Of a stretch of 64,000 nt of DNA, positions 5,079 through 60,010 are shown piece by piece; position 1 is the first letter of the stretch; each line of letters begins with the position of its first letter. Below the pieces are notes generated by a model that saw only the letters and a list, made by a program, of their open reading frames with translations, was not told the origin of the DNA and did not search any database. The stretch spans positions 1,984,001 through 2,048,000 of the forward strand of contig OX337240.1 in NCBI GenBank assembly GCA_946965045.2, written 5' to 3'. The translations under genes and the position numbers were made by a program. This stretch comes from Epithemia pelagica (taxonomy: Eukaryota > Protista > Bacillariophyta).

Positions 5079-5509
5079 AGCCCATGGAATGAAGTTCTAC
5101 GACTCTTGTTAAGTTATTTGTTATTTTCCAAAGCGACCAATTCACTTCATGCTTCATAGCAGCGGAAGATTGCTCCCTGACTTTTGCCTTCGGATGCCAT
5201 TGTTAGACAGATAGTGAATACTTTTATTTTACCAAACACAATTACGAGTATGATATCTCTTTCCAATTCCATTTCCCTTTTATCATGCACATGCAGGTTC
5301 TCATTCTCATGTGTGTTTGTGTCCTGTTCTCATTTTATGGTCATAGATTCGAGATTGAATCTCTGACTAACAGCCGGTTCGACTATATGGAATACAGTAC
5401 CTCGAGCAAAGGTGACAGCTGCTGGCAGTGGCCACAAATGAGAACTGAATGCGGCAAACAATAAAACACAAAACACCGCAAAGATATACCATAACTCAAG
5501 AAGTCGACC

Positions 5510-7014
5510 ATGTTCTTTTCTCCTCCCTTCCCCGGCGAGCAATATCTTCAGGTGGCGTTGCCCAACTACGGCTTGGCGCATGTTGTTGTATCCGCCTTGC
5601 TGGTTGTATCGTTTGTCTTTTGGATTTTTGTGTTTCCAGTGTGGTTCGTCAAAACCGAAGTCCAAACCGCGACAGCACCTCCTGAAGGACAGTCTCAGGC
5701 CAAGGACACGGCTTCTTCTAAAAAGGGCAAGAAATCTTCGAAAGCGTCTGAGCAGCCAGAAATTGTTTCCAAAGAAGTGCCTTTATTTGTCAGTGCATTG
5801 ACCGTATTGGGATTTGTCACAACCTCAGTGGTGGTTCTCCTTTGGTGCAGCCCTTACAACGGTTGGTTGCCCCGACGAGTGTTTCAAGCACCGCTTCTAA
5901 CACGTGAGGAATGCGACGAAATTGTGAAACGATCCATGGCGGCCGCGGAGCGTAATGTGCAACAGTCGCAAGCTCGATTGGCCGTCGTGGGTGGCTGGGA
6001 CAACTTGACCAAGGAAGAAAATCGAACCATGACGGCTTTGTTGGACTTTCCAAGTGGATGGCAAAAATCGAGACACGCGGCATATCCGACCACCGATTTG
6101 AATCTTGTTACTGATCCTTTCACCAAAGATGACCGAGAATTTATTGGTGGATTATTGCATCGACGACTATCTCCTTTGATAGTGCGTATCTTTGGCATTC
6201 CTTCCAAGAGTATTCGAAGCATTGATATCTTTGTGGTGCGCTACGATGTTGGTAAACGGACGAAACTGGCAAACCATTCAGATGAGGGAGATATTTCCTT
6301 CAATATTTTGTTAACGGATGATTTTGAGGGGGGAGGGACAAAATTTTGGGATCGCTCCAAAGAGGCACCGTTTGCTCATGTCGAACCAACAGAACCTGGG
6401 ACTGTGTTGACACATTCAGCTTTGATTCATCATGAAGGATACACCGTGTCGGAGGGTACACGAATCATCTTGGTTGGATTTACTTCCGTCGATCGAGTCG
6501 AGCCCTGGCAAAAAACGTGGACCGGACTGAGTTGGCTGGCCTCTTTTGCCAATTTGAACTTTCTCACGGTCAAGTTTAAATACAGTGTACACAACACGCA
6601 ACGTCGACTAGCGGAGAATTCATGGTTGGCCACACAATGGGATGAAAACGAATATGTTCGGTACCTGTTTAGTGATGTCTATGACATTGCCCTTGAAGTC
6701 GTCGACAGGATATCGTCACATGTCGTGGAGTCACTAGTGGCACCGAAAGACAAGGAAAATTTCATTTCTGCTCTCGAAGATGGATATCGTGCTGAACATC
6801 TTGACAAACCCAAGCCGGACGAAGCTTCATGGTTCAAGGGGCAGCAAATTCGTGTTAATCTGGTACGTGAAAGTGTCGTTCTGGCGAGTCGTATCTTTAG
6901 AAAAGATGAAGGTCAGAATCTAACTAGTTCGTGCTTGTTTTTGTGCAGGATGGAAGCATCGAATCGGAATGGCAGACGAGAGTTGACAACGTTAAGACAT
7001 TTGAGGAACTTTAA
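5510..7014 (+). CDS. Membrane-anchored 2-oxoglutarate/Fe(II) dioxygenase (prolyl/lysyl hydroxylase-like); join(5510..6862,6949..7014)
   Basis: HxD...H...R motif (LANHSDEGD...FEGGGT...IHHEG...GTRIILVGF) and two N-terminal TM helices. A GT-AG intron at 6863-6948 gives the C-terminus DGSIESEWQTRVDNVKTFEEL*. Confidence 0.85.
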
Positions 7015-9014: not shown

Positions 9015-9340
9015 CAAGACGCTAGTGAGACAGCAACACAAACCAACTACGACAAGATACGGTTGGGGTTGATGGGAATGAGGCGAGACAAAAGGGTACT
9101 CCTAATACGCGAGACAAAAAGATCCAAAGAAAAGATACTGTCACTAAAACGCCACTGAAACGCGACCCAAGACGACTTTTGATGCTGTGCGAGTGCGACA
9201 GAGCGAACCACATTCCCATTCCCATCTTCCACATTCGTTCCTGATCCTCTGATATCATGCAGCTCCGAATGAATTGACAATTGATTGATCATCTCTTATC
9301 TATTCAAGGATTGAACGTAGAAGGGATTGGACGTAGTGTC

Positions 9341-10717
9341 ATGTCGTCGTCAACTTCCTCGCAACAGGGCGAAGCAGATCGTCAGATATTGACTGTTCGA
9401 GCATTGGAAGAGGCTGTAGCCGTTCTGTTTGCCAACAACTTTGACGCGGACAGCTCGGTTTGCTTGGTGACTCTCATAAAAGTTTTGGACAATGTTTTAC
9501 ATAAGCCGGTTGACCCAATGGTTCGTCAGTTGCGATTAAGCAATGCCGCTGTTTGGCAAAAGATTGGCCAACGAAAGGGAGCAATTGAAATCTTAGAAGC
9601 CTGTGGGTTTCAAAAGGAAACGGCTCCACCACCATTGCTTTCTGGCAATACAGCGGGCAACGAAGCATCCGGAGAGTCCATACTAATACTTAAACCGGAT
9701 CGCGAAAACCAGTCGATCATTGTTACAGCTCGACGACTGTTGCAGATACGTGCTGTTCAGGACTTAAAGATGGATCCCAATCTCTTGCCACCGTATCGCG
9801 AACCCCCTCCTCCACCATCCGTGGTCATTGAAAACTCTAAAACTAACAGTGGTTTCAATGTGTTTGCTGGCCACCGATATGATGCCAAGTCGGCTGCAGT
9901 GGGAGCCAATCTGGGACCGTCCGAGGGGTACGTTAGCAAAACAGAAATCGCGTTGAATGCGCTTAAACAACAACAACAGAAATTGGAGCAGCGTTTCCAT
10001 GAACAAAACCCAGTGGAGCGAAATTGGCAGGCCTTTGAGCCTGTGCGAAACATGAGCAATGAAGGAGCTACAATATCAAGTAACAATGTCGGTGGTGGAG
10101 ATTCGAGTCTCTTGATGGCGCGAGCGCAACAGAAGGAGGCAGAACGTAAACAACGGGAAGAGGGTGGATTCACAACTGCGGCAATGAGAGAATTAGAACG
10201 ATTGAAAAAGGAAAAAGTATACAGCCATGTCACCCTCACAATACAGTTTCCATCGGGACATTCAGTACGTGGACAGTTTCTACCCAAGGAAACGGTCCAA
10301 ACTGTGGTGGAATCCTTACAAAAGGATTGCCTTATTGCAACAAGTGCACAAGTGGCAAACGAGAACACAGTATGCATCGATTTGTATGTTACACCACCAC
10401 GGCGACTTCTGGGATTGAATCAAACGTTGCAGCAGGAAGGGCTGGTACCCGCGGCCAAAGTATTTGCCAGTTGGAAGAAAGGATGTGGACCACGAGGGAA
10501 TAACGAATCATTCCTACATTCTCACTTGTTCCCTGAAAAGTCTTCTGAGCCTACCCCGTCCTTCCCCACGGGAGAAGCTGTCGCAAAACAACAAGAACAG
10601 AAGGAAGATGGGGCTAAAGTCGCAGCGACGACGTCGACAAAGAAACCAGCAAAGAAAAAGGGAGACCGAGAAGAAGATTTGCTAAAACGTATGATGGGTG
10701 GTGGCGGTAGACGATAG
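9341..10717 (+). CDS. PUB and UBX domain protein (p97/Cdc48 adaptor, UBXN6-like)
   Basis: PUB-like LIKVLDNVLHKP...RQLRLSNAAV...GAIEILEACGF and UBX-like VTLTIQFPSGHSVRGQFLPKETV...LYVTPP...GLVPAA. Confidence 0.85.
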   Translation: MSSSTSSQQGEADRQILTVRALEEAVAVLFANNFDADSSVCLVTLIKVLDNVLHKPVDPMVRQLRLSNAAVWQKIGQRKGAIEILEACGFQKETAPPPLLSGNTAGNEASGESILILKPDRENQSIIVTARRLLQIRAVQDLKMDPNLLPPYREPPPPPSVVIENSKTNSGFNVFAGHRYDAKSAAVGANLGPSEGYVSKTEIALNALKQQQQKLEQRFHEQNPVERNWQAFEPVRNMSNEGATISSNNVGGGDSSLLMARAQQKEAERKQREEGGFTTAAMRELERLKKEKVYSHVTLTIQFPSGHSVRGQFLPKETVQTVVESLQKDCLIATSAQVANENTVCIDLYVTPPRRLLGLNQTLQQEGLVPAAKVFASWKKGCGPRGNNESFLHSHLFPEKSSEPTPSFPTGEAVAKQQEQKEDGAKVAATTSTKKPAKKKGDREEDLLKRMMGGGGRR

Positions 10718-10815: not shown

Positions 10816-10955
10816 GTAGCTATTTACTCTACGAGTAGTAGCTCTTTGTAGTCGCACGCACAAGAAAACCAACAACCAATAGTCTCCAGCGGGGGTGAGT
10901 CCAGGTCGCAGGTGGGTCAGCATCTTCGATGCGCATCGCTCATTCGACTCATGAG
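10816..10955. repeat. Direct repeat R, copy 1, upstream of Crinkler-like gene 1
   Basis: Nearly identical to 13625-13770, which has a 6-bp insertion and about two substitutions. Confidence 0.93.
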
Positions 10956-11041
10956 CGACCTGTTTTAACACCCGCTGGGGGATACAACAACCAGCAAAGA
11001 CCCAGAGTACGGTACGATAATAGCGGGTTGGTGTTTCGACC

Positions 11042-12130
11042 ATGGCGTCCTCCTTCGACACCGCCTCTCAGAAACTCGCTCAGGGAATACCACCATTCCC
11101 CTTGCGTGACCTACCCACAACGCGGGACGAGCTGTTATGGACAGAAATTAGGAGCGAGTATAGCCTGACTTTGGCTGAATTGTCTTCGCTGAAGAACCAC
11201 GCGTGCGAAGAACAACATCGACCACAGCAACAAGAAGGTATGTTGAGGCAGCCGCAGCCGGTGTTTATGATCGGGGCCATCGTCAGAGGAGCGAAACAGT
11301 CGAACGGCGCGCGAGGGAATGTGTTCAAGTTTCTGGAAAGGCACTGCGGTCACTATTCAGAACAAGAAGGAATTCAAATCCGTTACGAGAACGATGATTT
11401 ACATATCAAAGCCTACTTTGTATCATACGAAGCGGCATGTCAACTGCAGACAGCGCTGAATGAATGGGAAATTCATAAAGAACTCGCTAATTTGAGAGGT
11501 GTTGCTCTTGATCCGCTCACACCCGCCGGAATTTCCATGCCTTCGGACTTGAAACGCATTTATTTGCAGGATTACCAACCGCAGGATAGTGAATCACCCT
11601 GTCAAACACTGGATCAACTGCATTCTTACCGTCTTTCCGTGCCCGTTACGGAGCCCGTGGAACCAAATACACCGCTCGTTCGCTATCAAAGCATCGACAA
11701 ACTCGTCCCTCATCTCAAGCACTACAAATGTCACTTGAAAGACAAGGCCAAATTTCAGCGGCTTCAAACCAACGAAAACAACATGCTCGCAGCAAGTTGG
11801 ACTTTTCATCAACAATTGGATGGCCTCAACGTGGATGAAGGGATGCCTCTAGCAGCTATCTCTGTCAAAGAAGCTTCCAGGTGCCGGATCGCGGCACATG
11901 ACGACCGATACCGTGTGACACTCTCCATTAAATTCTTCTACCCAGAACTTGCATTCTCATTTGCCGCTCTGGAAGGGGCACGCATGGTGGTAGATGATGA
12001 CGGTTCCCCCTACTGGGAGACGGTTGTCCACGTGAAAGACAAAAATTTATTTTTGGAATGTATTGAGTGGAAGTTTCAGGACACGACAAGACAGTGGCAA
12101 AATCACAGAGAATTTCTGGAGCAGGAGTAA
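11042..12130 (+). CDS. Crinkler (CRN)-like protein 1: shared 59-aa header plus HNH-like C-terminal nuclease domain
   Basis: First 59 aa identical to the 19636 ORF. The C-terminus carries KCHLKD...NENNMLAASWTFHQQLDG, matching the H...N...H-x-x-x-D pattern of HNH_2-type CRN C-termini. Intronless, 362 aa. Confidence 0.7.
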   Translation: MASSFDTASQKLAQGIPPFPLRDLPTTRDELLWTEIRSEYSLTLAELSSLKNHACEEQHRPQQQEGMLRQPQPVFMIGAIVRGAKQSNGARGNVFKFLERHCGHYSEQEGIQIRYENDDLHIKAYFVSYEAACQLQTALNEWEIHKELANLRGVALDPLTPAGISMPSDLKRIYLQDYQPQDSESPCQTLDQLHSYRLSVPVTEPVEPNTPLVRYQSIDKLVPHLKHYKCHLKDKAKFQRLQTNENNMLAASWTFHQQLDGLNVDEGMPLAAISVKEASRCRIAAHDDRYRVTLSIKFFYPELAFSFAALEGARMVVDDDGSPYWETVVHVKDKNLFLECIEWKFQDTTRQWQNHREFLEQE

Positions 12131-12856
12131 TTATTATCTTCATCTTCGTCTTTAGCCTTAGCATTGGAGCGAGGGGAAATTGCAGAATCAGGGGAAAAAG
12201 TTAAAACACAAGGAAAAACTGAAGAAGTATCAGGCCGAACTAAAGAAGGAAGAAGAAGATACCATGGCCCGGATTTTAGACGTCAGTTTTTATTGATGGA
12301 TATTGACAATGTAATACCAAGAGATTTGAGCAAACAGAAAAGCAACTGGTAGCATCACTTTAGGTATTTGTTTAGAATACAATTCCTTAGTTACCTACCA
12401 AAAGAGACTCAATTCAAACAAAATAAGAAGTATATATGTTTCTTGTTCCAATTCTAGAACTAATTGTTGAAACAAGAGTAGATACAACAATCAACAAATA
12501 CTAGAGTTGTTGTTTCCTTTTGTTCGGGCTGGTTGTTTCGTTTCTATAAACTCTACGCGGTGGACTTGTAACCACATGGGGTACTCGCGCGGTTCATGGT
12601 GCTGGAAGACTTGGTTGAAGTGTTGCTTCAGGGCTGTTTCGGTGATTCGTGGGAGAGCCGCTTCCTCCTGGTGGTTCGCCTTGTGGCGGACGACCAGGTT
12701 GAGGTGGATGGCTGCGGGTGGGTCCTTGTTTCCGCTGTGGTTCAAGGGCTTGGTGGTTGGAGACTTGTACGGGTTCCGGATTGGCGGTCGGAGAGGTGTT
12801 GTCGTAGAGGGTGTTCCGTTGGTGTTGTCGTCGTTTTCGTGGTGTTCATCTTCGTG

Positions 12857-13155
12857 TGTTGGAAATAATGAGCAAGAAAGAAAACACTGCGACTCGGGAA
12901 CGCCTGACGGAACAAGACCAAAGACAATGCAAGCAAGACCAAAAACAATGAAGAGTATTATGAAGAATAAAGCGAGCAGGACGAGCCCCGCACGCGTAAC
13001 ATACGCTGACGTAGTCAGAAAAGGAAAGGCGAACAAATCGCCAACAAATGAGTTTAGAGCTCATTCTTTGGAAACAATCAAGACAGTAAATTAGGATCAT
13101 TTTCGACTTTACAGTATAGTGGACAAAGCTGACGGCTACGACACTTTACTCAACA
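12857..13155 (+). mobile_element. Probable solo LTR of a CoDi-type copia element
   Basis: 299 bp bounded by inverted TGTTG...CAACA. It contains a frame ending TYADVVRKG...AHSLETIKTVN*, like pol tails that run into 3' LTRs. The flanks TCGTG and TTGTT match at only 3/5, so the TSD is not clean. Confidence 0.5.
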
Positions 13156-13624
13156 TTGTTTCCAAAGAAAATGATCGGTTCTCTGAATGGATACTGAGTA
13201 GTCGTGAACCTTATTAGTTTAATACAATAGAGCTTACCCTACTTTCGATAGGGCACTAGGTAATCTTAATTGTTTTTTTAATAACCGCGTCACTTAAGTG
13301 AACTCATCCGATTATGTCTAAGTATCAGTTGTCTCACAATTATTGGATGCCAATCAAACTCCGAGGCGTGCTTGTTGCATAAATAGTGTGACAGAATACT
13401 TAGATCTTCCATCCCCCACTCCTCTCGCGAACCGACCACGAGCGACACAAGACAACACATAACACAGCAGCATGCACCAACACAATGGGAACTCCTACAC
13501 AACACTAGAATAAAAAATCGAAGTACAGTAATTTTTGGGGCTTAGGTAGTGGGAGTGTGGGGAGTGACTTACTCCTCAGTGAGTGCTCAGTGAGTGGGGA
13601 AGGGTACGACGACGAGTGATAAAG

Positions 13625-13770
13625 GTAGCTATTTACTCTACGAGTAGTAGCCCTTTGTAGTCGCACGCAAAATCACAAGAAAACCAACAACCAATAGTCT
13701 CGAGCGGGGGTGAGTCCAGGTCGCAGGTGGGTCAGCATCTTCGATGCGCATCGCTCATTCGACTCATGAG
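13625..13770. repeat. Direct repeat R, copy 2
   Basis: Nearly identical to 10816-10955. Confidence 0.93.
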
Positions 13771-14513
13771 TGTGGTCGAGCCCTGGGAACGGCTGACTTG
13801 GACGCTGTGTTGGGACTTGCGACTCCATGACGGTCGGTTTGTGTTTCTCGAATGCCTTCGAAAGATCCTTCGTCGCGGAGGAGTTCGTCATGGTGGGATG
13901 TTGTTCGTGTTGGGGGGGGTTCCATTGAAATTTCAAACGAGCATGGCAGTCGAACACACGGTTTCATAGGGGGGAGGACGCGTATATCGTATTCGTGTAT
14001 ATATACATATATATTCTACGACTACGTTTGTGTTTACGAGAATTGTTCGTGAGACGGGGGGTTGGCTCGGACAAATTTTAGCGCTTTTCGATCTCAAACC
14101 TAAAATTTAACGCCAATCGTAAAGAACAGGTTTTAAGCTTATGCGAGCAGCATATAGGTGTCTCCCATAAATTTTATCGGAGTCAACGTGCTGCTCGAAG
14201 TGCTGTCTCCCTTATTAAAACAGTAAAGCAAGCTGTGTTAAGCAATGACACCTGTGTCATTTTTTCCCTCATTCATCGCGTCCAAGGTCACTCATTCATG
14301 AATGATACCAAAGCAATCTATTGTTACTTCTATTCCTTACTCGTCTACTGGCATTCCGTCCACACCGCCTCCCCACCGAAGATCATGAATGGTAAGTGCG
14401 CGGATTATTTCATACAGGAATCCAACCCATCAAGTGTTTCTTGTTTCCATTCACCCCTCTAATCTTTTCTGTGCAAAAATGCAGGTCTCATTGAGTCGAT
14501 CGAAGTTGCAGAG

Positions 14514-15041
14514 ATGCATCTTGAACCTGAAGACAACAATCAATCAAACACTGTTGTGATGGTCCCTTTCACTCTCCAGAAACCCCGAGTGCTAGTTACA
14601 GGAGAAAAGGGCAGTGTCATTGACGAGACCGCTGAAGCTACTGAGACCAGATATCTGCCCGAACAATACGCTTGTCCTGAAAGCATCAGTACAATTCTCC
14701 ACGAACTCAACCACAATACGCCTCCCTCCCAAACTCACGGATACATGCATTGGGAGAGTGTTTGCGGAGTCTGTCAACAAAATCCCTGCGTTATTGTCGA
14801 CAATCTTCCTTACCTTCATGAAATCGCAATGCATATGAAGAAAAAAGGTGAATCGAATCGCAGTATTCGATATCAATTGTATCGCCGCTTGTCGAACAAG
14901 CTTCACGGCCCCCTTGGACGCGGCCACCGTGTACAACTTCCTGATTGTTTGGTTGATTTTGTTCGCGAAAACTTCCCCAACGAGAACCCAGATGAACAGT
15001 ACGTTGGCTTTCGCGAAGGTCCTATCAATCACGACGAGTAA
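14514..15041 (+). CDS. piggyBac passenger ORF, 175 aa, with a CxxC-x3-PC cluster and a P2X7-ballast-like C-terminal motif
   Basis: Inside the TIRs and convergent with the transposase. Motifs CGVCQQNPC and RYQLYRR...HGPLGRGHRVQLPDCLVDFVRENFP...QYVGF. Confidence 0.7.
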   Translation: MHLEPEDNNQSNTVVMVPFTLQKPRVLVTGEKGSVIDETAEATETRYLPEQYACPESISTILHELNHNTPPSQTHGYMHWESVCGVCQQNPCVIVDNLPYLHEIAMHMKKKGESNRSIRYQLYRRLSNKLHGPLGRGHRVQLPDCLVDFVRENFPNENPDEQYVGFREGPINHDE

Positions 15042-15106
15042 TCAAGCACTAAGAGACTAGCGTCAAAGTGGGTAATATTCTCTTATTTAGATTATTCAAT
15101 TCTCTT

Positions 15107-18100
15107 CTACACTTCATGCATTTCTCTACTTTCGTCAGTACTTTCATTGTCACCATCATTGTTGTCATCGTCTTCGTCTGTATCATTCCGTTCCTGGTTC
15201 CTGCGCTTTCTTTTCCTTGTCCACTCTGGAGGCAACCCGTGTTTCTCGCGTAGATCCATTATGATTGGATGATTCTTCTTTGTTGTGTATTTGTATCGAG
15301 CTCCCGGAGATGACGCTGGTCGACACATGAACATTTCTCTTCCATTGGTCGAATGGAGAATCTCGAAGCATGTGAGATCAGTGAATTGAGGTAGTTGATG
15401 GATCTTCCATCCATCTTCTCTTTCGTCCTTGCATGATACCAAATGGGCAACAATCCCACACTTGGCACATTGACCCACGTTGGTAAAAATGCCTTTCATA
15501 CCGAGCTCTTTGCGTTTCCAACGATATTCCAACAAACATATGGCGCATGCAACTCGTCTGTTACCTTCCAATGGGATGGGATAGTGTCCATCTTCACACG
15601 TTCGTTCCCTTGTTGCAGTAGTCCTCCTTGCCAAAGCGTCTACTTCCTCTGTGTGGACATAGCTGCACATTGCTTGTGCAACACAGGTGTAGAATGCATG
15701 CCGCGTGAGCTTCGTGCGTCGAGCTCGGACACGGTCTCCAGCGGACATGTTCCATCCGATGTAGGCATTGAGAAGCATAACATCCATTATGCCTAAACCA
15801 GTCTTCTTGTACCACTTTTTGAAATGCCCATGGGTGGCAAAACCGCCAAAATGTTGTCGCATCTGGTCCCCTTCATCTATCCCCCCCATTGTCTCTTGAT
15901 ACCGAATGAGAACCATAGGGCAATTGAATACCTCTTTGTTGGGTCCAACTTGTCGTTCTACCTGTCCTTTGCCATTATTTTCATAACTCGATGCAAAATT
16001 TACCACTTTCGAGTCCACCCATTGCCCAATGATGATTCCATTCACTTCGTCGTGTGCCAGGTGGATTGTTCCTCGGTTAGTTTTTGTCTTCTTTAGTTGC
16101 ATCAGTCTCTTGTTCCACCCAACTCTGTTTGAACGTACTGTACCTGTCGCGAGGATTTTCAGACGATCACGAAGAATAACCAGTAATTGGGGCGCTGCAT
16201 ATCTATTGTCCATTGCCAAATGACGGAATCCGTTGGTTTCCTTATGCAACTCCAACGCATAACATGCGTTTACCACAGCCTTCATCGTTGTAGGAAGTTT
16301 CTTGGCCTCCTCTCGTATATAAGAGTTGGTAGCATTTTTTCCTTGATATACGTCAAGGTGGAGAATTGCATAGGACCTGGAAGAAGCGAGAATGAAGAAG
16401 TCTACACGAAATTTTTGCGGCTTGTCCTTGTTGTACTGCCTAACAGGGCAGTACCGGGAGCGACAGCCAATTCCACCTTCATCAAAAGCCAAATCTTGAG
16501 GAATCCGAAATGATCTCTTGGAAGCAGCGTTAACAGCTTGAATGAGTTTTCGAAGCTGGTAGCACTTGTCACCGCCCCTTGCAGCACCTTTGTTCTCAAA
16601 GTGAAAGGCTCCTCTTATCTGACGGAATCTGGCCAACCTCATGTATCTCGAAGCCCATCCTTCACTATCGAGAATCTCTACAGAGGGAAGAGCAGTTCCC
16701 AGACTGTACATACGGTTTGAGGTCTGAAAATAAGAGGCATAGCCTCCACCATCCACTGGCCGGAGTGACATCATTAGGACGATGCCGAGGAACCTCGTCA
16801 TTTCTTGTGCCGTGACATCCTTCCATTTTTGGGAATGATAATAACCTCGGCGCCCCATCAAACGCGGACGGATTTTCTGGTGAAAGTACTGATTAGTTGC
16901 CGCAGCCATATCGGAAATCAATGAATTTGACAATCCACCAATAACACGGATACAATCTAGTGGAGTATGGAACTCATCCGCTACTCCAGCTTTCAGACCG
17001 TCTTCTCCACGAAACATTGACCTGTTATGACGTTCCTTGCCAATCCACGACAACATATTGGTAGACGCATCAACCTCTTTGTAGTGAAAGTGCAAGTTGT
17101 CGATCAGTACTTTGAGATTTGTTGAATTGTTGGGGTCTTCGTCATCCGAAACCGAGTCTGTTGATTCTCCATCATCTTGTTGTGTATTGTCTTGGGCAGA
17201 ATCGTTGTCATCGCTTTGACAATAATCATCCAATGGATTCTGTGACCTTTGCACGGTATCATTGAAGTCCAGCTCAAAACCACCGTCGGCATCTTCATCT
17301 GAAGAAGATCCGTTGTCGTCAATGTCATCATTTGCTCCAGCGTTATTTTGCTGTTGTTGTTGTCGACGAGTGGTGACGGTAGGGATGGCAGCCATTTCTA
17401 TGGAGTTGTTGTTTGGTTGAAGTTGTTGAGCCGCGGTATCAGTTGTCCCTGTCGAGTCTCTTGTATTGGAAGTACCAAAAAGACGTGTGGCAACTTGGTT
17501 GATTGGAGTGTGATTGTTATCTTCATCTCCAGTTGCTGTCTCAAAGTTATTCATTGCTGGAGAGGGTTCACCTCGTGGGGCAGTCATCAAAGTGGCTCGA
17601 CCCTGTGCTCGCTCTTGAGTGGACGGTGGATTGGATCGTGTCCGACGATTGGAATGCCGCAAAGATGAATTGCTAGCATTCCTTAGGGCGTCTCTTCTTC
17701 GTGCTCGTTCTGTTGTGGGAGGAGGTGGTGGTGGTGCTCTTGCTGTGTTGCCGCGTCGAGGCGATCGTCGTAGTGCAGGTGACTGTGTGTTGCCGCGTCG
17801 AGGCGATCGTCGTAGTGCAGGTGACTGTGTGTTGCCGCGTCGAGGCGATCGTCGTAGTGCAGGTGACTGTGTGACGTTGTTGCTGCCACCATGAGCCTCG
17901 GAAACTTGACTTTGTTGTTGTTGCTGTTGTGTTGCAGATGGTTCACCATTTGGCCTGTATGCTTCAATGTACTGACGAAGCCTCTCTTTCACTGTTTTCG
18001 TTGATATGAATTGAGACTTGATCCAGTTCTGGGGGACTTGCATAGTACTAATCGTACCGTTGTCCCAGATAATGGAATAAGCATTGCCATTTTTCTTTGA

Positions 18101-18655
18101 CGGGCACTCCATGATTTTTCCGACCACACGAACAGGATTGTCAGTTTCATTTGGACGAAAGCGCCGTAGAAAATCTTGGTAGAAGTTATCATGGATCCAA
18201 AATTCGTCTGGAGCAACAAGAAAGCGCTTGGCATACGAAAAACGCGATCGCTGTTGGTTGTTGCCAGGTGGACGTCGAGGACGATCGTGTGTCTGTGTTG
18301 TTTCGGTAGCGACGCCTCCCGGACGGGCAACGTTGGAACCCGATTCTGTTCCATGTCCGCGTGTTGCTGTTGTTGTAGTAGTTATAGGTGCAACGTTGGT
18401 GGATGAATCCATTGCTTCCGGATTGCGGGGTGGAGGTGCGACAGTATTGTTGGCGATTGCTTCAAACGGTGGTGGTGGTTGGGGGGGAACACCAAAGGCT
18501 GCCTCTGTTGCTAAGGCATTGCCAACAGATTGTTCGGGAAGTTGGGCGGTATCTTCGGTGGCATGGTCAATATCTGGTTCGATGAGCGGTTGCGACAAAT
18601 TCGGTTGTCCTGACTCTTGGTCCTCGTTCTCCGCAGGTACAGCTGCAGACGACAT
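15107..18655 (-). CDS. piggyBac transposase (DDE_Tnp_1_7 type), 1182 aa
   Basis: Catalytic triad contexts AFDEG, MDNRY and MGGID; VRQYNKDKPQKF motif; Cys-rich C-terminal domain (CAIC...CAKC...H...C); long low-complexity N-terminus; no stops. Confidence 0.95.
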   Translation of the reverse strand: MSSAAVPAENEDQESGQPNLSQPLIEPDIDHATEDTAQLPEQSVGNALATEAAFGVPPQPPPPFEAIANNTVAPPPRNPEAMDSSTNVAPITTTTTATRGHGTESGSNVARPGGVATETTQTHDRPRRPPGNNQQRSRFSYAKRFLVAPDEFWIHDNFYQDFLRRFRPNETDNPVRVVGKIMECPSKKNGNAYSIIWDNGTISTMQVPQNWIKSQFISTKTVKERLRQYIEAYRPNGEPSATQQQQQQSQVSEAHGGSNNVTQSPALRRSPRRGNTQSPALRRSPRRGNTQSPALRRSPRRGNTARAPPPPPPTTERARRRDALRNASNSSLRHSNRRTRSNPPSTQERAQGRATLMTAPRGEPSPAMNNFETATGDEDNNHTPINQVATRLFGTSNTRDSTGTTDTAAQQLQPNNNSIEMAAIPTVTTRRQQQQQNNAGANDDIDDNGSSSDEDADGGFELDFNDTVQRSQNPLDDYCQSDDNDSAQDNTQQDDGESTDSVSDDEDPNNSTNLKVLIDNLHFHYKEVDASTNMLSWIGKERHNRSMFRGEDGLKAGVADEFHTPLDCIRVIGGLSNSLISDMAAATNQYFHQKIRPRLMGRRGYYHSQKWKDVTAQEMTRFLGIVLMMSLRPVDGGGYASYFQTSNRMYSLGTALPSVEILDSEGWASRYMRLARFRQIRGAFHFENKGAARGGDKCYQLRKLIQAVNAASKRSFRIPQDLAFDEGGIGCRSRYCPVRQYNKDKPQKFRVDFFILASSRSYAILHLDVYQGKNATNSYIREEAKKLPTTMKAVVNACYALELHKETNGFRHLAMDNRYAAPQLLVILRDRLKILATGTVRSNRVGWNKRLMQLKKTKTNRGTIHLAHDEVNGIIIGQWVDSKVVNFASSYENNGKGQVERQVGPNKEVFNCPMVLIRYQETMGGIDEGDQMRQHFGGFATHGHFKKWYKKTGLGIMDVMLLNAYIGWNMSAGDRVRARRTKLTRHAFYTCVAQAMCSYVHTEEVDALARRTTATRERTCEDGHYPIPLEGNRRVACAICLLEYRWKRKELGMKGIFTNVGQCAKCGIVAHLVSCKDEREDGWKIHQLPQFTDLTCFEILHSTNGREMFMCRPASSPGARYKYTTKKNHPIIMDLREKHGLPPEWTRKRKRRNQERNDTDEDDDNNDGDNESTDESREMHEV
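17744..17872. repeat. 42-bp tandem repeat x3 encoding TQSPALRRSPRRGN in the transposase
   Basis: Three perfect 42-bp units. Confidence 0.95.
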
Positions 18656-19057
18656 TGCATTTGGTGGACGTCTTCTTCACTATATGGACCGTCGGAATGG
18701 AGAATCCTGCAACGATCGGCCCAAATGGTAGATATGTATAAGAGTACAAAGTTGGGCCATGGGCGAAGGATGATCGAAATGAACAGAAATGAGGAAAATC
18801 GCCAATTTTTCAAAGCAAAATATCATGCTATTGACTGTGTATTTACTGTAGACTATCATTTATGAAGTTGTTCGGAATTCCAAGATCTTTCGAACGATGA
18901 AGTCAGATCTGCATGAAATTAAAGTTTCAGGAAGTTATACCAAGTGAAAGTTAAGGGAGTAGCGTATACGCTGCTCCCATATATGGGAGTAGCGTATACG
19001 CTGCTCGCTTACGATTGGCGTTAATGGGTTATGAGGGCACCTTTAAGTGCGTTTTTA

Positions 19058-19571
19058 GGCCGTCCCTCTATAGCATCGACAAAACCAAACCTGAAGCGTG
19101 ACACGTCACTAAAAACCCGGAAATATGACGTCAAATCCGGGTTTTCTGTCATTTCAGGTTTTGCAACGACAACAAGCTGAGCGCAGGTTTTGTAATTTTT
19201 TTAACCCTCCAAACCAATTTTTACCATTAGGGATAATCCGAAATGACATTAGGGATAGTGTTTTATCTATGCTAGTGTATGTTTTTCCCACAGAAATGAC
19301 AAATGACGGTTGCTATATGCGCGGTGCGCGTTCGACTTCAACGGTCACCCTAACCCCAATGAGGCTACATGAAACATGCGGGCTTGATGTCCTACTTTCA
19401 AAACTTTTAGTATTCAACTATTAAAAGTGAATATGAGGACTGTTGGGGGCCTTGGGGGAATGCAGCGCGGAATCGGGTTTTGGTGCTATAGGACGGCGAA
19501 ACGCGCCAAAACTGAATTTAGTGATGACGTCACGCTTCAGGTTTGGTTTTGTCAATGCTATAGGGATGGCC
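19058..19571. mobile_element. PIF/Harbinger-type (Tourist-like) MITE, 514 bp
   Basis: TTA TSD at 19055-19057 and 19572-19574; about 55-bp imperfect TIRs starting GGCC and containing GACAAAACCAAACCTGAAGCGTGAC; no coding capacity. Confidence 0.88.
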
Positions 19572-19635
19572 TTAGTTTAAGATTTCAGGTATAAGTATTG
19601 CAGTAGAGTCCCAATAGCGGGTTGGTGTTTCGACC

Positions 19636-21129
19636 ATGGCGTCCTCCTTCGACACCGCCTCTCAGAAACTCGCTCAGGGAATACCACCATTCCCCTTGCG
19701 TGACCTTCCCACAACGCGGGACGAGCTGTTATGGACAGAAATTAGGAGCGAGTATAGCCTGACTTTGGCTGAATTGTCTTCGCTGAAGAACCACGCGTGC
19801 GAAGAACAACATCAGAGACGGCCGCCTTTGTACCCAGACAGTACGTCAGACGCCAAGGAATGGAATACCAATTTTGACCGGAAGCTCGATCAGATCTTGG
19901 AAGCTACAAAACAATCCGACAAAGCTACTCCACAGTATTCGGCTGCATTTGTCGGAAACAAAGAAAAGAAGAGGTTGGTTGCCGACGGTCGTTTCTCGTT
20001 TTTCCACGAGAAAGTTGGCGAGGCAAGTGTGCTTACCGTTGACCAAGCGGAAGCATTGTCTACTATGAAAAACGAACATCAAGTGGTCGCCTACATGACA
20101 CCATACCTTGAAGAACTTGTCCGAGATACAGTCAGTTGCTCCGTTTTTAATTCGGAGGAATACAAATGGATCGAGACAAGTGCGGAAACCACCATCTACA
20201 ACGAAAAGCCTGACTTGATTATCATGCATCCTGCTTTCATCAACAGGAAACCGCCTTTCAAATGCGAGAAAGACAAAGTCTTGGAAGAAATGCGAAGGGA
20301 TGGTGATTTGTATGGAGTCCTTTCCCAATGGAAGCTTCGAGATTTTATTGGTCTCACCTGCGAGGCAAAGCAAAGCATCGACAATCAAGCTTTTGGGGAA
20401 GTGATCAATTATGGAGCACATCTTTGCTTTGGAACACATGGCTCAGTGGCAACAAGATTGATGCTGTTTGACAAGCGGGTGTTTTGGCTTGTTGATTGCG
20501 TGCAAGGAGTTGTGGCGAGCGTGGTAACATGCCGGTGGATAGATGAGGGATCGAGACAACTCTTGCGTGATTTTGTTCGCCAACCTGTATTGCCTAGGCT
20601 ACTGAATGATGCCTGCGCTCACTTTAACTTGACTGTCAAATCAGACTCTTTCTTGGGCGCGGGAGCTTACGGTTTCGTTTTCCGTGCGCAGCGTGCTGAC
20701 GGCATATTTGTCGCCCTCAAAACTGTCTTGAAACAAGATGCCGACACAAACATACAGCGACTGGAAGCAGAGAAGGAAAAAACTATCAGAGCGAAGAATG
20801 CGTGTCCAGACGAGGTTGTGGGTGTAGAAGAGGATGGGTTCCATACATTTGAAGATGGTGCCGCTTTAGTCTTGTCGGCTGTTGGTGACCACTTCTCAAC
20901 TCTATCTCCTCAGGGCATTGTCGACTCTCTGAAGAGACTGCACAAATCCGGGATCATACACGGAGATGCACGGCTTGAAAATGTGGTTGGCGTGAATGGC
21001 AAACCCTGCTGGGTCGACTTTGCTGACTCGGACTTGTTGTTGCAGGCGCCTCTTCTCATGGAGAGAGAGATGAACGGACTCATCGGATGTGTACAAGAGC
21101 GCTTCGAAGGGTACGAAGCCGATGGCTAG
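19636..21129 (+). CDS. Crinkler (CRN)-like protein 2: shared 59-aa header plus PD-(D/E)xK REase-like domain plus protein kinase
   Basis: Header identical to the 11042 ORF. NSEEYKW...KPDL...CEAK is REase-like. Kinase motifs LGAGAYG, VALK, HGDARLEN and VDF are present. The architecture resembles oomycete CRN8-type kinases. Intronless, 497 aa. Confidence 0.78.
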   Translation: MASSFDTASQKLAQGIPPFPLRDLPTTRDELLWTEIRSEYSLTLAELSSLKNHACEEQHQRRPPLYPDSTSDAKEWNTNFDRKLDQILEATKQSDKATPQYSAAFVGNKEKKRLVADGRFSFFHEKVGEASVLTVDQAEALSTMKNEHQVVAYMTPYLEELVRDTVSCSVFNSEEYKWIETSAETTIYNEKPDLIIMHPAFINRKPPFKCEKDKVLEEMRRDGDLYGVLSQWKLRDFIGLTCEAKQSIDNQAFGEVINYGAHLCFGTHGSVATRLMLFDKRVFWLVDCVQGVVASVVTCRWIDEGSRQLLRDFVRQPVLPRLLNDACAHFNLTVKSDSFLGAGAYGFVFRAQRADGIFVALKTVLKQDADTNIQRLEAEKEKTIRAKNACPDEVVGVEEDGFHTFEDGAALVLSAVGDHFSTLSPQGIVDSLKRLHKSGIIHGDARLENVVGVNGKPCWVDFADSDLLLQAPLLMEREMNGLIGCVQERFEGYEADG

Positions 21130-24256: not shown

Positions 24257-24384
24257 CGCCACTGTCAATGAAAGGAACGTAACCGCATCGAACGTACCAC
24301 ATGGCAACATCATGTTACCGTGGTTGGCCGCCACTGTCAATGAAAGGAACGTAACCGCATCGAACGTACCACATGGCAACATCA
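24257..24384. repeat. 56-bp perfect direct repeat x2, period 72
   Basis: Copies at 24257-24312 and 24329-24384. Confidence 0.95.
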
Positions 24385-41757: not shown

Positions 41758-42659
41758 GCCGCCCTTAGATGCAATATCTTCCAGGCCCAAGGTCATTCAC
41801 CGATTACTTATGACAATTATCTTGCTCTGCTCGGTTCTACGGCCTTCAATATTGATTCTAGGCACACGGGCAAGCCTCGTCGTCAAGCTAATACTGCCAA
41901 TCAGACTTCCTCTAGCTCTAGTTCCCATAACAAGGGGGGACATGGCAATCAAGAAAGCCAAACATAATCATAATAAGATCAAGTACATGTATGGTGTTCG
42001 TATTCCGCGCAATCCAGCTGAAGCACTCTGCTTTGATGAAGAAAATGGCAACACTAAATGGCTTGATTCTATGAAACTAGAGATACAGCAGTTAATGGAT
42101 TACCAGACCTTTATAGTCAAGGGAACCAATGTCTACATGCCTGCTGATTATACCAAGATTAGATGCCGCATAGTCTTTGCCGTCAAACATGATGGTCGCC
42201 ATAAGTCATGATTCGTGGCAGGTGGACACCTGACAGACAATCCTGGGGAAAGTGTGTACTCTGGAGTAGTATCTCTCAGAAGTATCAGACTTATCCTGAG
42301 CTCAATGGCTTACAGGCTTATCAAGCTGATGTTGGGAATGCGTACCTCGAAGCGCGTATACAAAAGAAAAGGTATACTTCGAAGCTGGTCCAGGATTTAG
42401 GGCATTTGGTCTTGAAAGGTACACTATGGTTATAAACAAGGCACTCTACGGTCTCAAGACATCTGGGAAACGTTATCATGAACGCTTTGCAGACACAATG
42501 CGCAATGACGGATTCACCCTATGTCGCGCCGATACAGACGTTTGGATGAGACGTAATGGTAATGTTTATGAATACGTTGCTGTATATGTAGATGACCTGT
42601 TGTTGATCATGAAGAACCCAAGAGAATATCTTGACAGACTTGTCAATGTCCACAAGTAT

Positions 42660-42840
42660 CACTTATTCGCGTCGTGGCAAAAAGCAAGTTCTTAAAAGAC
42701 TAAGCTTAGATCTACATGTATGGATCCGCCACTTTAGTACGATGGTATACGATAATGACCCTCCACCTCATTCATTCCCCCCAGAACTTCCCCTACATGC
42801 GGGAATGACCGATTCCCGGTCTGACCACCTGAAAGAAACA
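42660..42840 (-). repeat. 3' LTR, 181 bp
   Basis: Identical to 49048-49228. Confidence 0.97.
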
Positions 42841-42900
42841 GTCCCCGCAAGTACCACAATCAACAACATGAGTGAGGGACTTGAAACAATAATCAACGAG

Positions 42901-45900
42901 TTAGAGGTTGGCAGCATTAGCGGACGCGATCGTTGGCGGGCCAGAATGTCCGAAGGCGGACGAGTACGTGAAGCGAGAAATGAGCTCGTTCCGGCGCTCC
43001 CGTGGCAATATCTTAGTGAACAGGTCGGCCAAGTTTGTTTCGGTATCTTCCTTGCCAACACGAAGGATCCCTGCGGCGGCCGCCTCACGGACGGCGTGGT
43101 AATTGATGGCGTTGTGTCGCTTTGTCAAGACGGACGATGGGATGCTCGTGTTCTTGACGACACCCCGGTTGTCACAGAGTACGTCAGCTGGTTCAACCAC
43201 TGGCACACCGAACATTCGAAGTTTATAGCGCATGGAAACGATCATTTCCTTCGCTATCTGTAAAGCAACAAACTCGCTTCCGAAACTCGACGTTTTCACG
43301 GTATTTTGCCGCTTGGAGAACCACAAGACGGGTGCGTTCTGCATGAACAAAAGGACGCCGGTGTGGGAACGACGGGTAACAACGTTCCCTGCATGGTCTG
43401 CATCGACGAAGCAGGTGATTTTTATCGGCCTCCCCAATGGCTCTGGCATTCCGATGGGCAATTCCTCGGCGACCTCGCCGTAGAACTCCTTCCACTCATC
43501 GATGGGTATTTGTGGGAAACACGTTTCATCCAAGCGAACATCTTTGGGGTCAAACACCATTTTCAACTTCAAGTGCTTCTTGAGAAATGCAAACACGTGG
43601 TACAGCGCCTCTAGGTGTCCTTCCCTCGGACTAGCCAGGTATTGCGACATCAAGGACACCTCCAAATAGATATCTACCCGTCCCAGCTCGACGGCCCACC
43701 GGAGGATTCCCACCATTTGTTGGTACCGAGAGGTAAGCTCCGGCCCCAGTTCCGGACTTGTGTCGAGTTCCGGTTTGTAAGTCGAAACGATGGGTACCCT
43801 CGCTGTGGTTTTCAGATGTTTGCCATCTCCGTCATCCACTAACATTTGTTCAACTATCTTCACGGCGTTTGTCAAGTATTTCTCACTTGTCATCCCCCAG
43901 GCCCAACTCCCATCAGGGAGACTATGCTTGTACACTTGAGCCCCCAGGTACAAACTCGGCTCACCCACGCTTCCGGCCTTGATTTTGTAGTGGCTATCTA
44001 TCTCGTCCAATACTGGTTGCGGGTTGGCACTGACCAAGAGTATGTCGTCGACATAAACTAGAATCAACTCGTAGTATTCCTCGCCACTTTCCTTTCTCGC
44101 TTTTCTTCGTAGTACGCAAGCGTCCGCTCGCGTGTCGACGAACCCCATATCATATAATGTGCTGATCAATGTTGCCCTCCAACTAGCTCCCGAGGATTTC
44201 AAGCCATACAATGCTCTCGTCATTACACATACCTTGCCCTATCTTCACTTCCTACTTCGGACCCACCTAGGAACCAAATCTTCTCCCGACACGGCGCGTT
44301 TAGGTACGCGTTCCCGATGTCGCACGCCATTACCTCCAGGTTATTGAGCGCAGCAATCAGGAACGCCACGCGAATGGAGTCCCTACTGACCACACTGGAA
44401 TAGGTCAGGCTTGTAGGTGCATCTGTCATGTGGCCGCCAGCGACTAACCGTGCCTTGCGGGTAAGATCTAGCTTGATATCGAACACCATGTGACATTTGA
44501 TTTCCGTATACCCAATTAGTTGTCGCCCCGCGCGCACTTCCGCTAATTCTAGGTCGTCCCGCGACTCCCAGGCTACCTTCACTACCTTCAGCTCCTTGTC
44601 TATAGCTTTCCTCCAGTAATCTGTTCCTGTCTGTTCGTCGATGGCGAGTGCCTCATCAACCGAATGCGGTAGCCGGATTCCGAACTTCTGCGTCGTCTTC
44701 CAATATTTCTTCTTTACCTTATTTATCATACGACGCATATGGTTCAGTGTCTGTGGCACCCACCAGTGAAACGCCGGTTCTGATTCTATTCCTTGTGCCA
44801 CAGTGTATTCGGCCAAGTCGAGTGGATATCCATCCTTCATGATCTTGAGTGGTAACCATTGTTGTGACCCATCGACCAACTTGACGGCAATGTCCCATCC
44901 TTTCGTTGTTCGCCTCGGATGTCGATTGCCGTTCCTTCCGGTGGTAAAGCCGTCTTCCTTCGCGACCGCGTCCCCGTCTTTCCTATGTCCAACAATTTCC
45001 TTCACGAGGACAAACTCTTTTCCCTCGTTGTCCAATTTTGCAAACAGGTTCTCCGCTACCACGTTCGCCGTATATTCATGGATTATCCCGCCCGGGAATT
45101 TCACCTCGTAAGTACGGGTATCGAAGATGGGGTTCTTATTCTTTCGACCTATGGGCTTGCCGTCTAACCCCTTCTGTCTCTTCATTACGGTGCCGATGAG
45201 CTCTTCTCCGCCGATATCCATGCGGATCTGGGAACCGATGTACTCGTCGTACTCGTTCTCTATCTCATCCGCATCAGGAGCCTCCTCCTGGACCATTTGG
45301 TCATACTCTTTGTCGGTAGGGACAAGTCCCCGTCTTCTTTCCGTCGCGTCGTCATCCTCGACGACGTCCTCCAGATACCCCGGCTTTCCGTCCCCGTCGT
45401 CGGTGAAATTGGTATCATCTAATCTGTTTTCAACAATCAACCTAAAATCCCGTATCTTCTCGCGGATTTCTTCCTTCTCCTGGTCGTCCTTGGTCACGTG
45501 CTGCACGGTTGTTCGGGCGACAACCTTGCCCGATTTCGTCAACACCCAATAGCATAAGTCACTCCCGATGCGATGTGCTATGCCCAGCCAGTACCCCAAC
45601 TGGTATTGGTCTTCCGTGGCATCGGCCTTTGGGTTAGTATGATACCACACCAGGTCGTAAAATTGGAAGTCGATCCATTCGGAGATATCGGGCGTCTCCC
45701 CAGTGAGTCGTTCCAAGCCGGTACGGCCGTCTGGTCCCCGGGCGACTCGGCTGAGGAGACCGGCCTCATATACGAGGCCATAGTCCCAAAGGCGCTTAGG
45801 AACTTGTTTATCGGTCATGCGACGGCGCCACCGCTGCTTGAGGAGACCAATTTCTCGCTCGGCCTTGTGGTTTTGCTTGCTCGTGCCCTTTTCTGACCAG

Positions 45901-48900: not shown

Positions 48901-48986
48901 GTTGAACCAGGTTCGTCGTCCTTCGGGTTCCCCTTGGCGGTACTCGCCGTACCATTCCTCGTCGTCGAACGTGTCGTCGTCGTCAT
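42901..48986 (-). CDS. Gag-Pol polyprotein (Gag, protease, integrase with chromo-like module, RT, RNaseH), split by a 1-bp frameshift at about 44238
   Basis: Protease EMDTMADTC; integrase YTDTLF...DLAGEQ...KAEREIG; RT DIGNAYL and YVDDIL; RNaseH VDADHAG. Adding one G to the GGG run at 44239-44237 fuses the two ORFs (SEDRGKVCVMTRALYG). Confidence 0.93.
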
Positions 48987-49047
48987 CGCTTCGCTTCTAC
49001 TCTCTCTTATCGTCTTTCTCGTCAGAGTCAGTTGGGTCTGATAAACT

Positions 49048-49228
49048 CACTTATTCGCGTCGTGGCAAAAAGCAAGTTCTTAAAAGACTAAGCTTAGATC
49101 TACATGTATGGATCCGCCACTTTAGTACGATGGTATACGATAATGACCCTCCACCTCATTCATTCCCCCCAGAACTTCCCCTACATGCGGGAATGACCGA
49201 TTCCCGGTCTGACCACCTGAAAGAAACA
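49048..49228 (-). repeat. 5' LTR, 181 bp
   Basis: Identical to 42660-42840. Confidence 0.97.
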
Positions 49229-51842: not shown

Positions 51843-51972
51843 ACATTCCGAACCATGATTATGCTCCCATTGTATGTGGACTTGGTTCCGAGAACATAGA
51901 ACTCTACACATTCCAAACAATGATTATGCTCCCATTGTACATGGAATTGGTTCTGAGAACATAGAACTCTAC
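51843..51972. repeat. Imperfect 65-bp tandem duplication
   Basis: Units start at 51843 and 51908. Confidence 0.85.
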
Positions 51973-52345
51973 AAGGCTTCCGTGGTCGTGGACGGCAGTC
52001 ACCCCATCACTCGCAATACAACCTGTCGGATTCGTGTTTGCAGCAACTGGTTGGCAAAAAGGGATGCTAGATGGTATCCCAGAATCTTCCAAATGGTTCT
52101 TTGGGTAGCAATATATTGGTGGAGGCGCTCTTTTAAGTTGAGTAGGATGGCCCACGTTTGTATGATGGGCATGGCACGTCCATCGGCCATTTTTTGTTTT
52201 CCTATTTAGGATGATATCTGGATCAGACTTCTCCAGATCATCGGCATGTGCCTTGACGAGTTTGCTTGCCACGGGAGCTGCCAGGATCGTCGTCATGCAT
52301 AGTCCCTTCATGCTCCAATTCCATTGTTTTCATCGTCCACGAAAA

Positions 52346-52479
52346 GATTGTGATCTTGGTCTTCGATTTCTCGGAGGTGGTATGGCTGCATCGAGTATCT
52401 CTAGTCCATCAAAAGGATTGTGATCTTGGTCTTCGATTTCTCGGAGGTGGTATGGCTGCATCGAGTATCTCTAGTCCAT
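52346..52479. repeat. 64-bp direct repeat x2, period 70
   Basis: Copies at 52346-52409 and 52416-52479. Confidence 0.9.
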
Positions 52480-59277: not shown

Positions 59278-60010
59278 ATGAATGCCACAAGGTTATCCGC
59301 ATGTCTCGGCTCTGGCCTTCTTGTCTTCCTGTCCTACTACTACCGGTCCTACCGAACGGCAGTACCCTTCTTCTTCTTCTTCTTCTTGCAACAACCAAGC
59401 ACTTTGACTGAGAATCTGTGGCAGAAAGGATGGATACGCAATGAGAATGATGCATCATTTAATGCATCAATGAGCTCGACCAAACGAGGCAAGGAAAATT
59501 CGATGATGGATCAAGACGAGCAGTATGCCAGCGACAACGACAACTCCTCGTTTCGGCTGCAACGACAACAACAACAAATGGGACAATCCACTCCTCATTT
59601 CGGCCGCCAAACACGACAGTCCACTTCTCATTTCGGCCACGACGACGACGACAACAACAACAACAACAAACGCAACAATCCACTCCTCATTTCGGCCGAA
59701 TGACCCTAACACCATCGGAGATCAGCAATCAGCAATCAATCAAGAACTGGTCCGAAAGCACTACGAGTACGAAGATGCACATGTAAGGTACTCCTACTAG
59801 TCTAGACATCCTATGGCCTTGTTACAATTCCAACTAACATTATGATAGTTGTTTTATAGGGCACCGGCTTGAGTTTGCCATGGTGTGTGGTGTCTTATGC
59901 AGTGGGGAATGGAAAGGACATGCAAAATACCTGGCGGTTGAAGAACAAATCAGTATAGAGGCTAACGCTATGGTTGATCCTCCCCAGTTGCATCACGTGC
60001 AACTACGGTA
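59278..60010 (+). pseudogene. Decayed spliced gene fragment with short internal repeats
   Basis: CCAC(T)(C/T)CTCATTTCGGCC occurs three times at 59586-59697. The 59278 frame continues past two stops and across a GT-AG intron-like gap (about 59783-59860) into HRLEFAMVCGVLCSGEWKG. Family unknown. Confidence 0.35.

Follow-up and report, generated by a model that had tools for sequence, protein, structure and literature searches.

Two neighbouring genes of the diatom Epithemia pelagica share a nearly identical header module: a probable footprint of recent exchange in a modular protein family

Crinkler-type modular effectors have been studied almost only in pathogens. Crinkler (CRN) effectors of oomycetes and the broader class of Crinkler/RHS-type (CR) proteins are built from a constant header and diverse enzymatic C-termini, one common CR type of which pairs a nuclease-like part with a kinase, and the junction behind the header serves as a point of recombination; bacterial polymorphic toxins carry a constant N-terminal trafficking part and variable C-terminal toxin tips. 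According to the account of Zhang et al. 2016 in the review PMC5289972, CR proteins do occur in free-living eukaryotes, their headers can be alpha-helical, and about one-sixth of their C-termini are of the restriction endonuclease (REase) plus kinase type; in animals, Crinkler-like genes have been proposed to spread with neighbouring transposons (PMC12957317). Here we describe two genes, A and B, that follow the same plan as CRN and CR proteins and lie in a 64,000-nucleotide (nt) stretch of the Epithemia pelagica genome (GCA_946965045.2, contig OX337240.1, positions 1,984,001 to 2,048,000 of the forward strand; hereafter the window, from whose first letter positions are counted). The two genes begin with a nearly identical header and continue into entirely different C-terminal parts. 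We regard them as probable members of a diatom-wide modular family, with the 201 nt that they share as the footprint of a recent exchange limited to the header module.

From CRN sensu stricto the diatom proteins differ in that their header, of about 55 residues, is helical, is not of the ubiquitin-like LxLFLAK kind and is not represented in Pfam; in place of an HVLVVVP-type motif, which was not seen, the junction has a low-complexity and often glutamine (Q)-rich linker; and they come from a photosynthetic diatom rather than from a pathogen. With bacterial polymorphic toxins they have in common the mix-and-match logic, nuclease-type tips and a diversity driven by recombination, but the diatom family is eukaryotic, and among the genes neighbouring A and B no immunity gene or secretion-system partner was recognised. 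AACRNL, a Crinkler-like ADP-ribosyltransferase of free-living animals (PMC12957317), resembles the diatom case in placing a CRN-type toxin domain in non-pathogens, behind a non-canonical N-terminus and with transposons nearby; it differs in its C-terminal enzyme and in its degenerate ubiquitin-like header, where the diatom header is helical and conserved, and the diatom gene copies show no sign of transposon-borne spread. The literature searched contained no paper on such proteins in diatoms.

A header shared by two neighbouring genes

The two header copies (Table 1) agree at 200 of 201 nt (blastn E=5e-99). Their sole mismatch, at 11113/19707, is synonymous, codon 24 reading CTA in A and CTT in B, Leu in both. 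The repeat is made up of a 23-nt leader (11019-11041 in A), 59 codons (11042-11218) and one extra common base; the 60 nt on either side are 22-23% identical, i.e., at the random level, and the similarity thus stops sharply at both ends. An earlier note on this DNA, made from the letters alone, had described a shared 201-bp block with one synonymous difference and total divergence past the junction, and on both counts the comparison agrees with it; the 24-nt leader given there is in fact 23 nt, the remaining base being the one shared after the 59 codons.

Table 1. Position, strand and basis of the features of genes A and B and of the element lying between them.
Feature	Position in window	Strand	Description and basis
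Header copy A	11019..11219	+	Leader, gene A codons 1-59 and 1 base; header profile E=9e-26
Header copy B	19613..19813	+	Leader, gene B codons 1-59 and 1 base; blastn and header profile
Gene A, 362 amino acids (aa)	11042..12130	+	Open reading frame (ORF); header, Q/P-rich linker, two-lobed C-terminal domain
C-terminal module of gene A, aa 74-362	11261..12127	+	Two-lobed model; uncharacterised domain
Gene B, 497 aa	19636..21129	+	ORF; header, linker and helix, PD-(D/E)xK-like region, minimal kinase
REase-like region of gene B, aa 100-330	19933..20625	+	Motif level only
Minimal (Bud32/RIO-sized) protein kinase of gene B, aa 331-497	20626..21126	+	Profile, fold, catalytic residues
Upstream segment of gene A, first copy	10816..10955	+	94.5% identical to 13625-13770 over 146 columns
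Upstream segment of gene A, second copy	13625..13770	+	Same alignment; lies between A and B
piggyBac-like transposon	14103..19045	-	Between A and B; absent from L001; not part of the header system

An independent 2.9-Mb contig (ENA ERZ21939226 ctg1362l; L001) is 99.9% identical to the window. It holds both genes with identical coding sequence and with the same single difference between the header copies, and gene A is called there, too, as a 362-aa gene; the window differs from it by a 4.9-kb insertion (14103-19045), absent from L001, and by nine substitutions. Because this independent contig has both copies and the same single-base difference, misassembly of the duplicated header, which the earlier note had named as an outcome that would overturn its reading, is excluded.

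Within the window and loci L001-L003, the header profile found these two copies and one orthologue, and nothing else. In the source genome, a near-identical header was found in genes A and B only (word-indexed search, among the matches listed, to proteins of 199-633 aa). The restriction to two copies that the earlier note had considered thus describes this genome, among the matches listed, and does not describe the family, in which the header is far more widely distributed (see below).

A direct repeat of about 140 nt brackets gene A (Table 1), with one 6-nt indel between its copies. Between the end of the first copy and the header repeat lie 63 nt, which have no counterpart near B. The upstream repeat may be what is left of an earlier tandem duplication that took in promoter and header.

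The header domain and the modules behind it

With its 59 residues alone as the query against 1.84 billion cluster representatives (E<=1e-3), the header was found in at least 92 protein clusters; our protein searches depend on shared words, and all homologue and cluster counts are at-least figures. In 82 of the 98 bearers, the profile places the domain inside the first 30 residues. In the header alignment (A5), P25, W33 and L42 are invariant and K11, L24, Y40, L44, E46, L50 and N52 nearly so. Conservation ends at about residue 55, where a low-complexity linker begins that is richer in Q than the remainder of the proteins (10.3% versus 4.6%) and that has at least four Q within 25 linker residues in 22 of 73 header proteins. 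AlphaFold predicts three helices for the header, at modest confidence. Neither the 59-aa header nor the whole proteins revealed a relative of the header in Pfam (even at E<=10), the PDB, PADLOC or NCBIfam, and hhalign of A5 against P0058, a protein with a Crinkler N-domain, returned a probability of 0.2%. The header is a discrete helical domain of about 55 residues and is not the Crinkler ubiquitin-like header. This accords with the earlier note, which had proposed a short helical header (as the model, too, suggests) and had seen no LxLFLAK ubiquitin-like one.

What follows the header is highly varied. The 33 bearers with at least 120 residues past the header fall into at least 23 BLAST-distinct C-terminal groups, so that the combination of one header with differing C-termini, which the earlier note had seen in two genes, extends to the family. 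Recognisable tails include HNH_2 (P0129, P0195), protein kinase (P0130, P0200) and P-loop/STAND NTPase (P0159) domains; the tails of most bearers contain no recognised domain. No signal peptide was evident, and on inspection the N-terminus showed no hydrophobic stretch. Some candidates were set aside: P0148 and P0172 (repeat-rich, cadherin-like) and P0201 (Sel1/TPR, E=7e-4) are probable false positives as header bearers, and P0226 and loci L004 and L005, considered as cases of a header on a separate exon, were found to be without the header. A contig from a beach-sand metagenome (L006, 2423-2886) shows a header ORF, a palindromic stretch and a second start of the same header, either as an assembly loop or as a tandem header.

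Gene A has at least 81 homologues and gene B at least 32, and every named one is from a diatom, as the earlier note's attribution of the family to a probable diatom would have it; the named sources are Nitzschia inconspicua, Amphora coffeiformis, Cylindrotheca fusiformis, a Bacillariaceae metagenome-assembled genome, Attheya and Synedra. Several homologues are MMETSP transcripts, and the A and B families are therefore expressed in cultures.

The AlphaFold model of gene A (mean pLDDT 78) has a confident N-lobe (aa 74-172) and a confident C-lobe (aa 262-361) with a low-confidence stretch between them, in which H231, K235, N247, W253, H256 and Q257 are invariant among A-type sequences. This C-terminal module has no match in Pfam, the PDB, PADLOC or NCBIfam. 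The earlier note had called it HNH-like, and the spacing of the invariant His, Asn and His is a lead in that direction only; the assignment itself was examined along four lines, none of which supports it. HNH was found by Pfam in neither gene A nor 46 relatives; the PDB profile search came back empty; hhalign of A against the HNH_2 header-bearing proteins P0129, P0208 and P0195 aligned the header alone, giving 0.2-0.3% once the header was removed; and the segment with H231, N247 and H256 has a pLDDT below 50-60 and forms no beta-hairpin in the model. A fold search of the PDB with the model produced weak, partial, ferredoxin-like matches only (E>=0.02), which we discarded. Against BFVD, Foldseek matched the model to B5LWM7 (E=6e-14) and B5LWG2 (E=1e-9) of Feldmannia species virus, both of them uncharacterised proteins of a brown-alga virus and the sole significant fold matches of A; a pattern scan found no A-type relatives in viral contigs. 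These structural matches hint that genes have passed between stramenopiles and the large DNA viruses that infect them.

The A-type module occurs behind up to 13 unrelated N-terminal groups, at least nine of which have several members. In P0058, the Pfam Crinkler N-domain PF20147 (32.2 bits; cutoff, 24.6) stands ahead of an A-type C-terminus, and the P0058 N-terminus matches four Nitzschia inconspicua proteins (E=1e-10 to 3e-8). Judged by these profile and sequence matches, the A-type module is a physical link to true Crinkler headers, and the analogy with Crinklers drawn in the earlier note is largely borne out, with P0058 and its Nitzschia relatives as a direct connection. The family is not Crinkler sensu stricto, its header falling outside PF20147; by its architecture it fits the broader CR class, in that one header is found on many C-termini and the A-type module on several headers, that of Crinklers included.

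For gene B (mean pLDDT 84, pTM 0.74), the C-terminus is, by profile, predicted fold and catalytic residues, a minimal protein kinase, Bud32/RIO-like in size. Pfam Pkinase matches 31 of 33 B-family members; Foldseek retrieves PDB kinases at about E=3e-7, and a profile search of the PDB reaches E=3e-7; each of the catalytic features (the glycine loop, K362, H442-x-D444, N449 and D461) is present in at least 31 of the 33; and the domain, about 167 aa long, has Bud32 catalytic-loop matches and ends about 35 residues past the DFA motif. All of these agree with the kinase that the earlier note had placed at the end of gene B. The preceding region (aa 100-330), which the note had assigned to the PD-(D/E)xK REases, is conserved throughout the family at E174 (33/33), P192-D193 (33/33), E243 (32/33) and K245 (30/33), and the helices and strands of the model follow one another in an order that a PD-(D/E)xK core could have. 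It has no profile match in Pfam, PADLOC or NCBIfam, and when the full-length model was searched against the PDB all matches were kinases, which saturated the search. Thus, the E...PD...ExK pattern and the order of elements speak for the assignment and a profile or fold match for it was not obtained, such that a restriction-endonuclease-like domain is plausible from its motifs only. The B family shares other N-termini with the A family (P0042 with P0033, 46% over 121 aa, E=3e-28); among the B-family members examined, no Crinkler header was found on a B-type module.

Exchange footprints and competing explanations

Near-identity limited to one module is not confined to the header copies of A and B. 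Window positions 11213-12856, i.e., the A module from codon 58 onwards together with 726 nt downstream of the gene, are 99.27% identical to L002 (ENA ERZ21939226 ctg1296l), another contig of the assembly to which L001 belongs. The paralogue there (5475-6891) has a putative first exon at 5475-5679, which would join in frame, and a GT...AG interval of 292 nt at 5680-5971, and its homology to A starts 2 nt after the AG of this interval; its exon-1 peptide is unrelated to the header and matches the N-terminus of the family protein P0056 (40% over 63 aa, E=2e-8). The C-terminal breakpoint (11213) hence lies within 6 nt of the header junction (11219), and the leader and coding sequence of gene A are nearly all covered by 99%-identical segments at two loci, with the switch in a 7-13-nt stretch of the linker. 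Between A and L002 there are eight replacement and three silent differences, to which the 729 nt of flank add one more. Because one of the replacements hits a nearly invariant column, constraint on the L002 copy may be relaxed. The locus adjoins a gene of 1746 aa with DUF6589, which is transposase-related.

A second diatom genome (ERZ25042306) holds P0035, which bears the header, and P0037, which bears an unrelated 110-aa N-terminus, and the DNA coding for their C-termini is 99.1% identical, with a pN/pS of 0.27, as against 86.8% identity and 11 indels in the 3' flank; the homology begins at residues 78/79, at the header end. P0063, from the first genome, has an N-terminus of the P0037 type (58% identical) but reaches only 61% identity to P0037 in the C-terminal part. 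With the C-termini of P0035 and P0037 at 99.1% versus 61% for P0063 and P0037, the histories of header and C-terminus therefore disagree. In the uncultured P0142, P0170 and P0156, headers that are 93-100% identical over 50-54 residues are followed by full divergence. Breakpoints at the junction, a CR feature, are by these alignments present in the source genome, in ERZ25042306 and in uncultured relatives.

A close precedent is fragment recombination and gene conversion among Phytophthora CRN genes (PMC3726527; Haas et al. 2009 as cited in PMC5289972), whose paralogues have near-identical modules with breakpoints at the boundary of header and C-terminus, as seen here; the tandem or dispersed arrangement of the genes and the transposon-rich surroundings are likewise similar. 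The diatom case differs in that gene A has both of the complementary footprints, and in the intron that one paralogue has at the boundary.

How old the joining of header and B module is bears directly on how the 201 nt came to be identical. A fragment of 143 aa from another sample, P0114, aligns with B straight through the header-B junction, at 80% over 112 aa, while the header DNA of A and B is 99.5% identical; the header-B fusion is therefore older than the 201-nt identity. From this comparison, the identity would be better read as gene conversion between two header-bearing genes than as a new fusion. The recent header swapping proposed in the earlier note accordingly survives as recent and recurrent exchange at the junction and, given the P0114 junction, not as a brand-new swap.

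In the explanation that we favour, each protein consists of a short N-terminal header, a low-complexity and often Q-rich linker and an exchangeable, enzyme-like C-terminal module. The 201-nt identity would most likely stem from non-allelic gene conversion between adjacent genes that both already bore the header, with the conversion tract ending in the linker, where the homology between differently built paralogues ends. The same process would act on the C-terminal modules, and headers and C-termini would be exchanged or homogenised separately at the DNA level. Breakpoints cluster at the junction, the point at which at least one paralogue appears to have an intron. The header might then be a handle that the proteins share, be it for trafficking, for binding a partner or for regulation; the C-termini, if they resemble those of CR proteins, might be enzymes with nucleic acids or proteins as their targets, deployed against viruses, parasites or competitors.

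Several points weigh against this explanation. There are two near-identical header copies only, among the genome matches listed, and the age of the fusion is taken from a single short fragment, P0114, that comes from a different sample. The header repeat has one difference in 201 nt and the upstream repeat eight in 146 nt, counts that would also allow an older block duplication followed by purifying selection on the header (rough Poisson p of about 0.1), and conversion may have run from A to B or from B to A. The REase assignment for gene B comes without a profile or fold match, the domain of gene A has no known activity, and such function, secretion or toxicity as A and B may have is read, by analogy, from their architecture. 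Moreover, Zhang et al. 2016 may already have described this header among their alpha-helical families.

Some of the same observations would suit a one-off chimera, in which the 5' end of A was recently copied to a position before a nuclease-kinase gene and was then kept by purifying selection, with no ongoing exchange. The two near-identical copies among the genome matches listed point that way, as do the upstream segment of 140 nt, repeated at 94.5% as a broken-up block duplication would leave it, and the other homologues of gene B, at least 31 of the 32 retrieved being without the header. We nonetheless think such an event unlikely, since by the P0114 junction, at 80%, the fusion predates the 99.5% DNA identity, since the 63 nt between upstream repeat and header lack a counterpart near B, and since module-limited identity recurs, at C-termini in two genomes and at headers in uncultured relatives. 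Poorer still are the prospects of transposons having copied header-module genes as cargo, with the shared pieces as transductions. Transposons do abound around A and B, with a polymorphic insertion of the piggyBac-like kind and an inverted-repeat element of 516 nt between the two genes, and paralogous loci adjoin DUF6589 protein and RVT_2 retroelement genes; yet the ends of the repeat show neither terminal inverted repeats nor a target-site duplication and its bounds are those of the protein module, L001 has both header copies without having the piggyBac-like element, and the contrast in ERZ25042306 between coding sequence (99.1%) and flank (86.8%) is a signature of conversion, not of transposition.

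It is a little less probable again that the header is an ordinary regulatory or localisation domain of housekeeping signalling proteins with no role in conflict or as a toxin. This would be in keeping with the missing signal peptide, with a toxicity that is deduced from architecture, with a free-living photosynthetic host and with the pN/pS of 0.27 in ERZ25042306, which is that of ordinary purifying selection; it sits badly with tails (HNH_2, nuclease-like plus kinase, P-loop/STAND NTPase) that match the CR effector repertoire (PMC5289972), with the occurrence of the A-type module behind a Crinkler header of Pfam, and with patchy copy number, the reshuffling of modules and the eight replacement against three silent differences between A and L002. 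To an assembly artefact that pasted the 201 nt twice we assign practically no probability: the general risk attached to any repeat is all that could be adduced for it, and both copies are present on two contigs that differ by the 4.9-kb insertion and nine substitutions, with both ORFs intact and collinear with homologues.

Beyond the modular family with module-wise exchange that we favour, a broader picture may be entertained, which we hold to be possible though rather doubtful: that diatoms maintain a large repertoire of conflict enzymes, intracellular or exported and still diversifying, on a lineage-specific helical header, with module-limited conversion and exon shuffling at the Q-rich linker as the source of its diversity and with an A module shared with the phaeoviruses of brown algae, as part of an arms race between algae and their viruses or parasites. 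If true, diatoms would have, as eukaryotes and non-pathogens, an equivalent of the polymorphic toxins of bacteria. The diatom case offers a new header motif (about 90 clusters), a catalogue of its C-terminal partners, the link to Crinklers and three or four independent, dated footprints, through which the exchange mechanism becomes testable by population and comparative genomics; it also provides candidate genes for diatom-virus and diatom-parasite interactions, which are relevant to bloom ecology.

Neighbouring genes and mobile elements of the window

The genes around A and B are eukaryotic, among them those for a PUB/UBX protein (9281-10717), DJ-1, ribosomal L9 and an alpha-kinase. The piggyBac-like segment (Table 1) is an insertion polymorphism, because it is absent from the 99.9%-identical L001. 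It contains an uninterrupted minus-strand ORF of 1182 aa (DDE_Tnp_1_7, E=3.5e-50), within which lie three exact 42-nt tandem units (17744-17873), and an ORF of 175 aa with a weak P2RX7_C-like match; short inverted ends stand beside TTAA at 14107-14110 and 19021-19024. The empty site on L001 is not a clean TTAA, some 25 further bases being different. A 516-nt segment at 19057-19572, present in L001 as well, has at its two ends inverted repeats of 57 nt that are 88% complementary. Its downstream end is 40 nt away from header copy B, and it has the appearance of a miniature inverted-repeat element in the promoter region of gene B.

No match to Rfam was found in the window. Farther along, a copia-type (RVT_2) long terminal repeat retroelement occupies 42659-49228, with two fully identical (100%) terminal repeats of 182 nt, a G+C content of 52-55%, above that of its surroundings, and a polyprotein frame divided over two ORFs, i.e., with one break. 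Short tandem duplications of 56-73 nt (91-100%), together with one pair of 75-nt inverted repeats 1.1 kb apart, are scattered over 24257-24384, 51843-51973, 52335-52479, 61301-61445 and 58747-60036.

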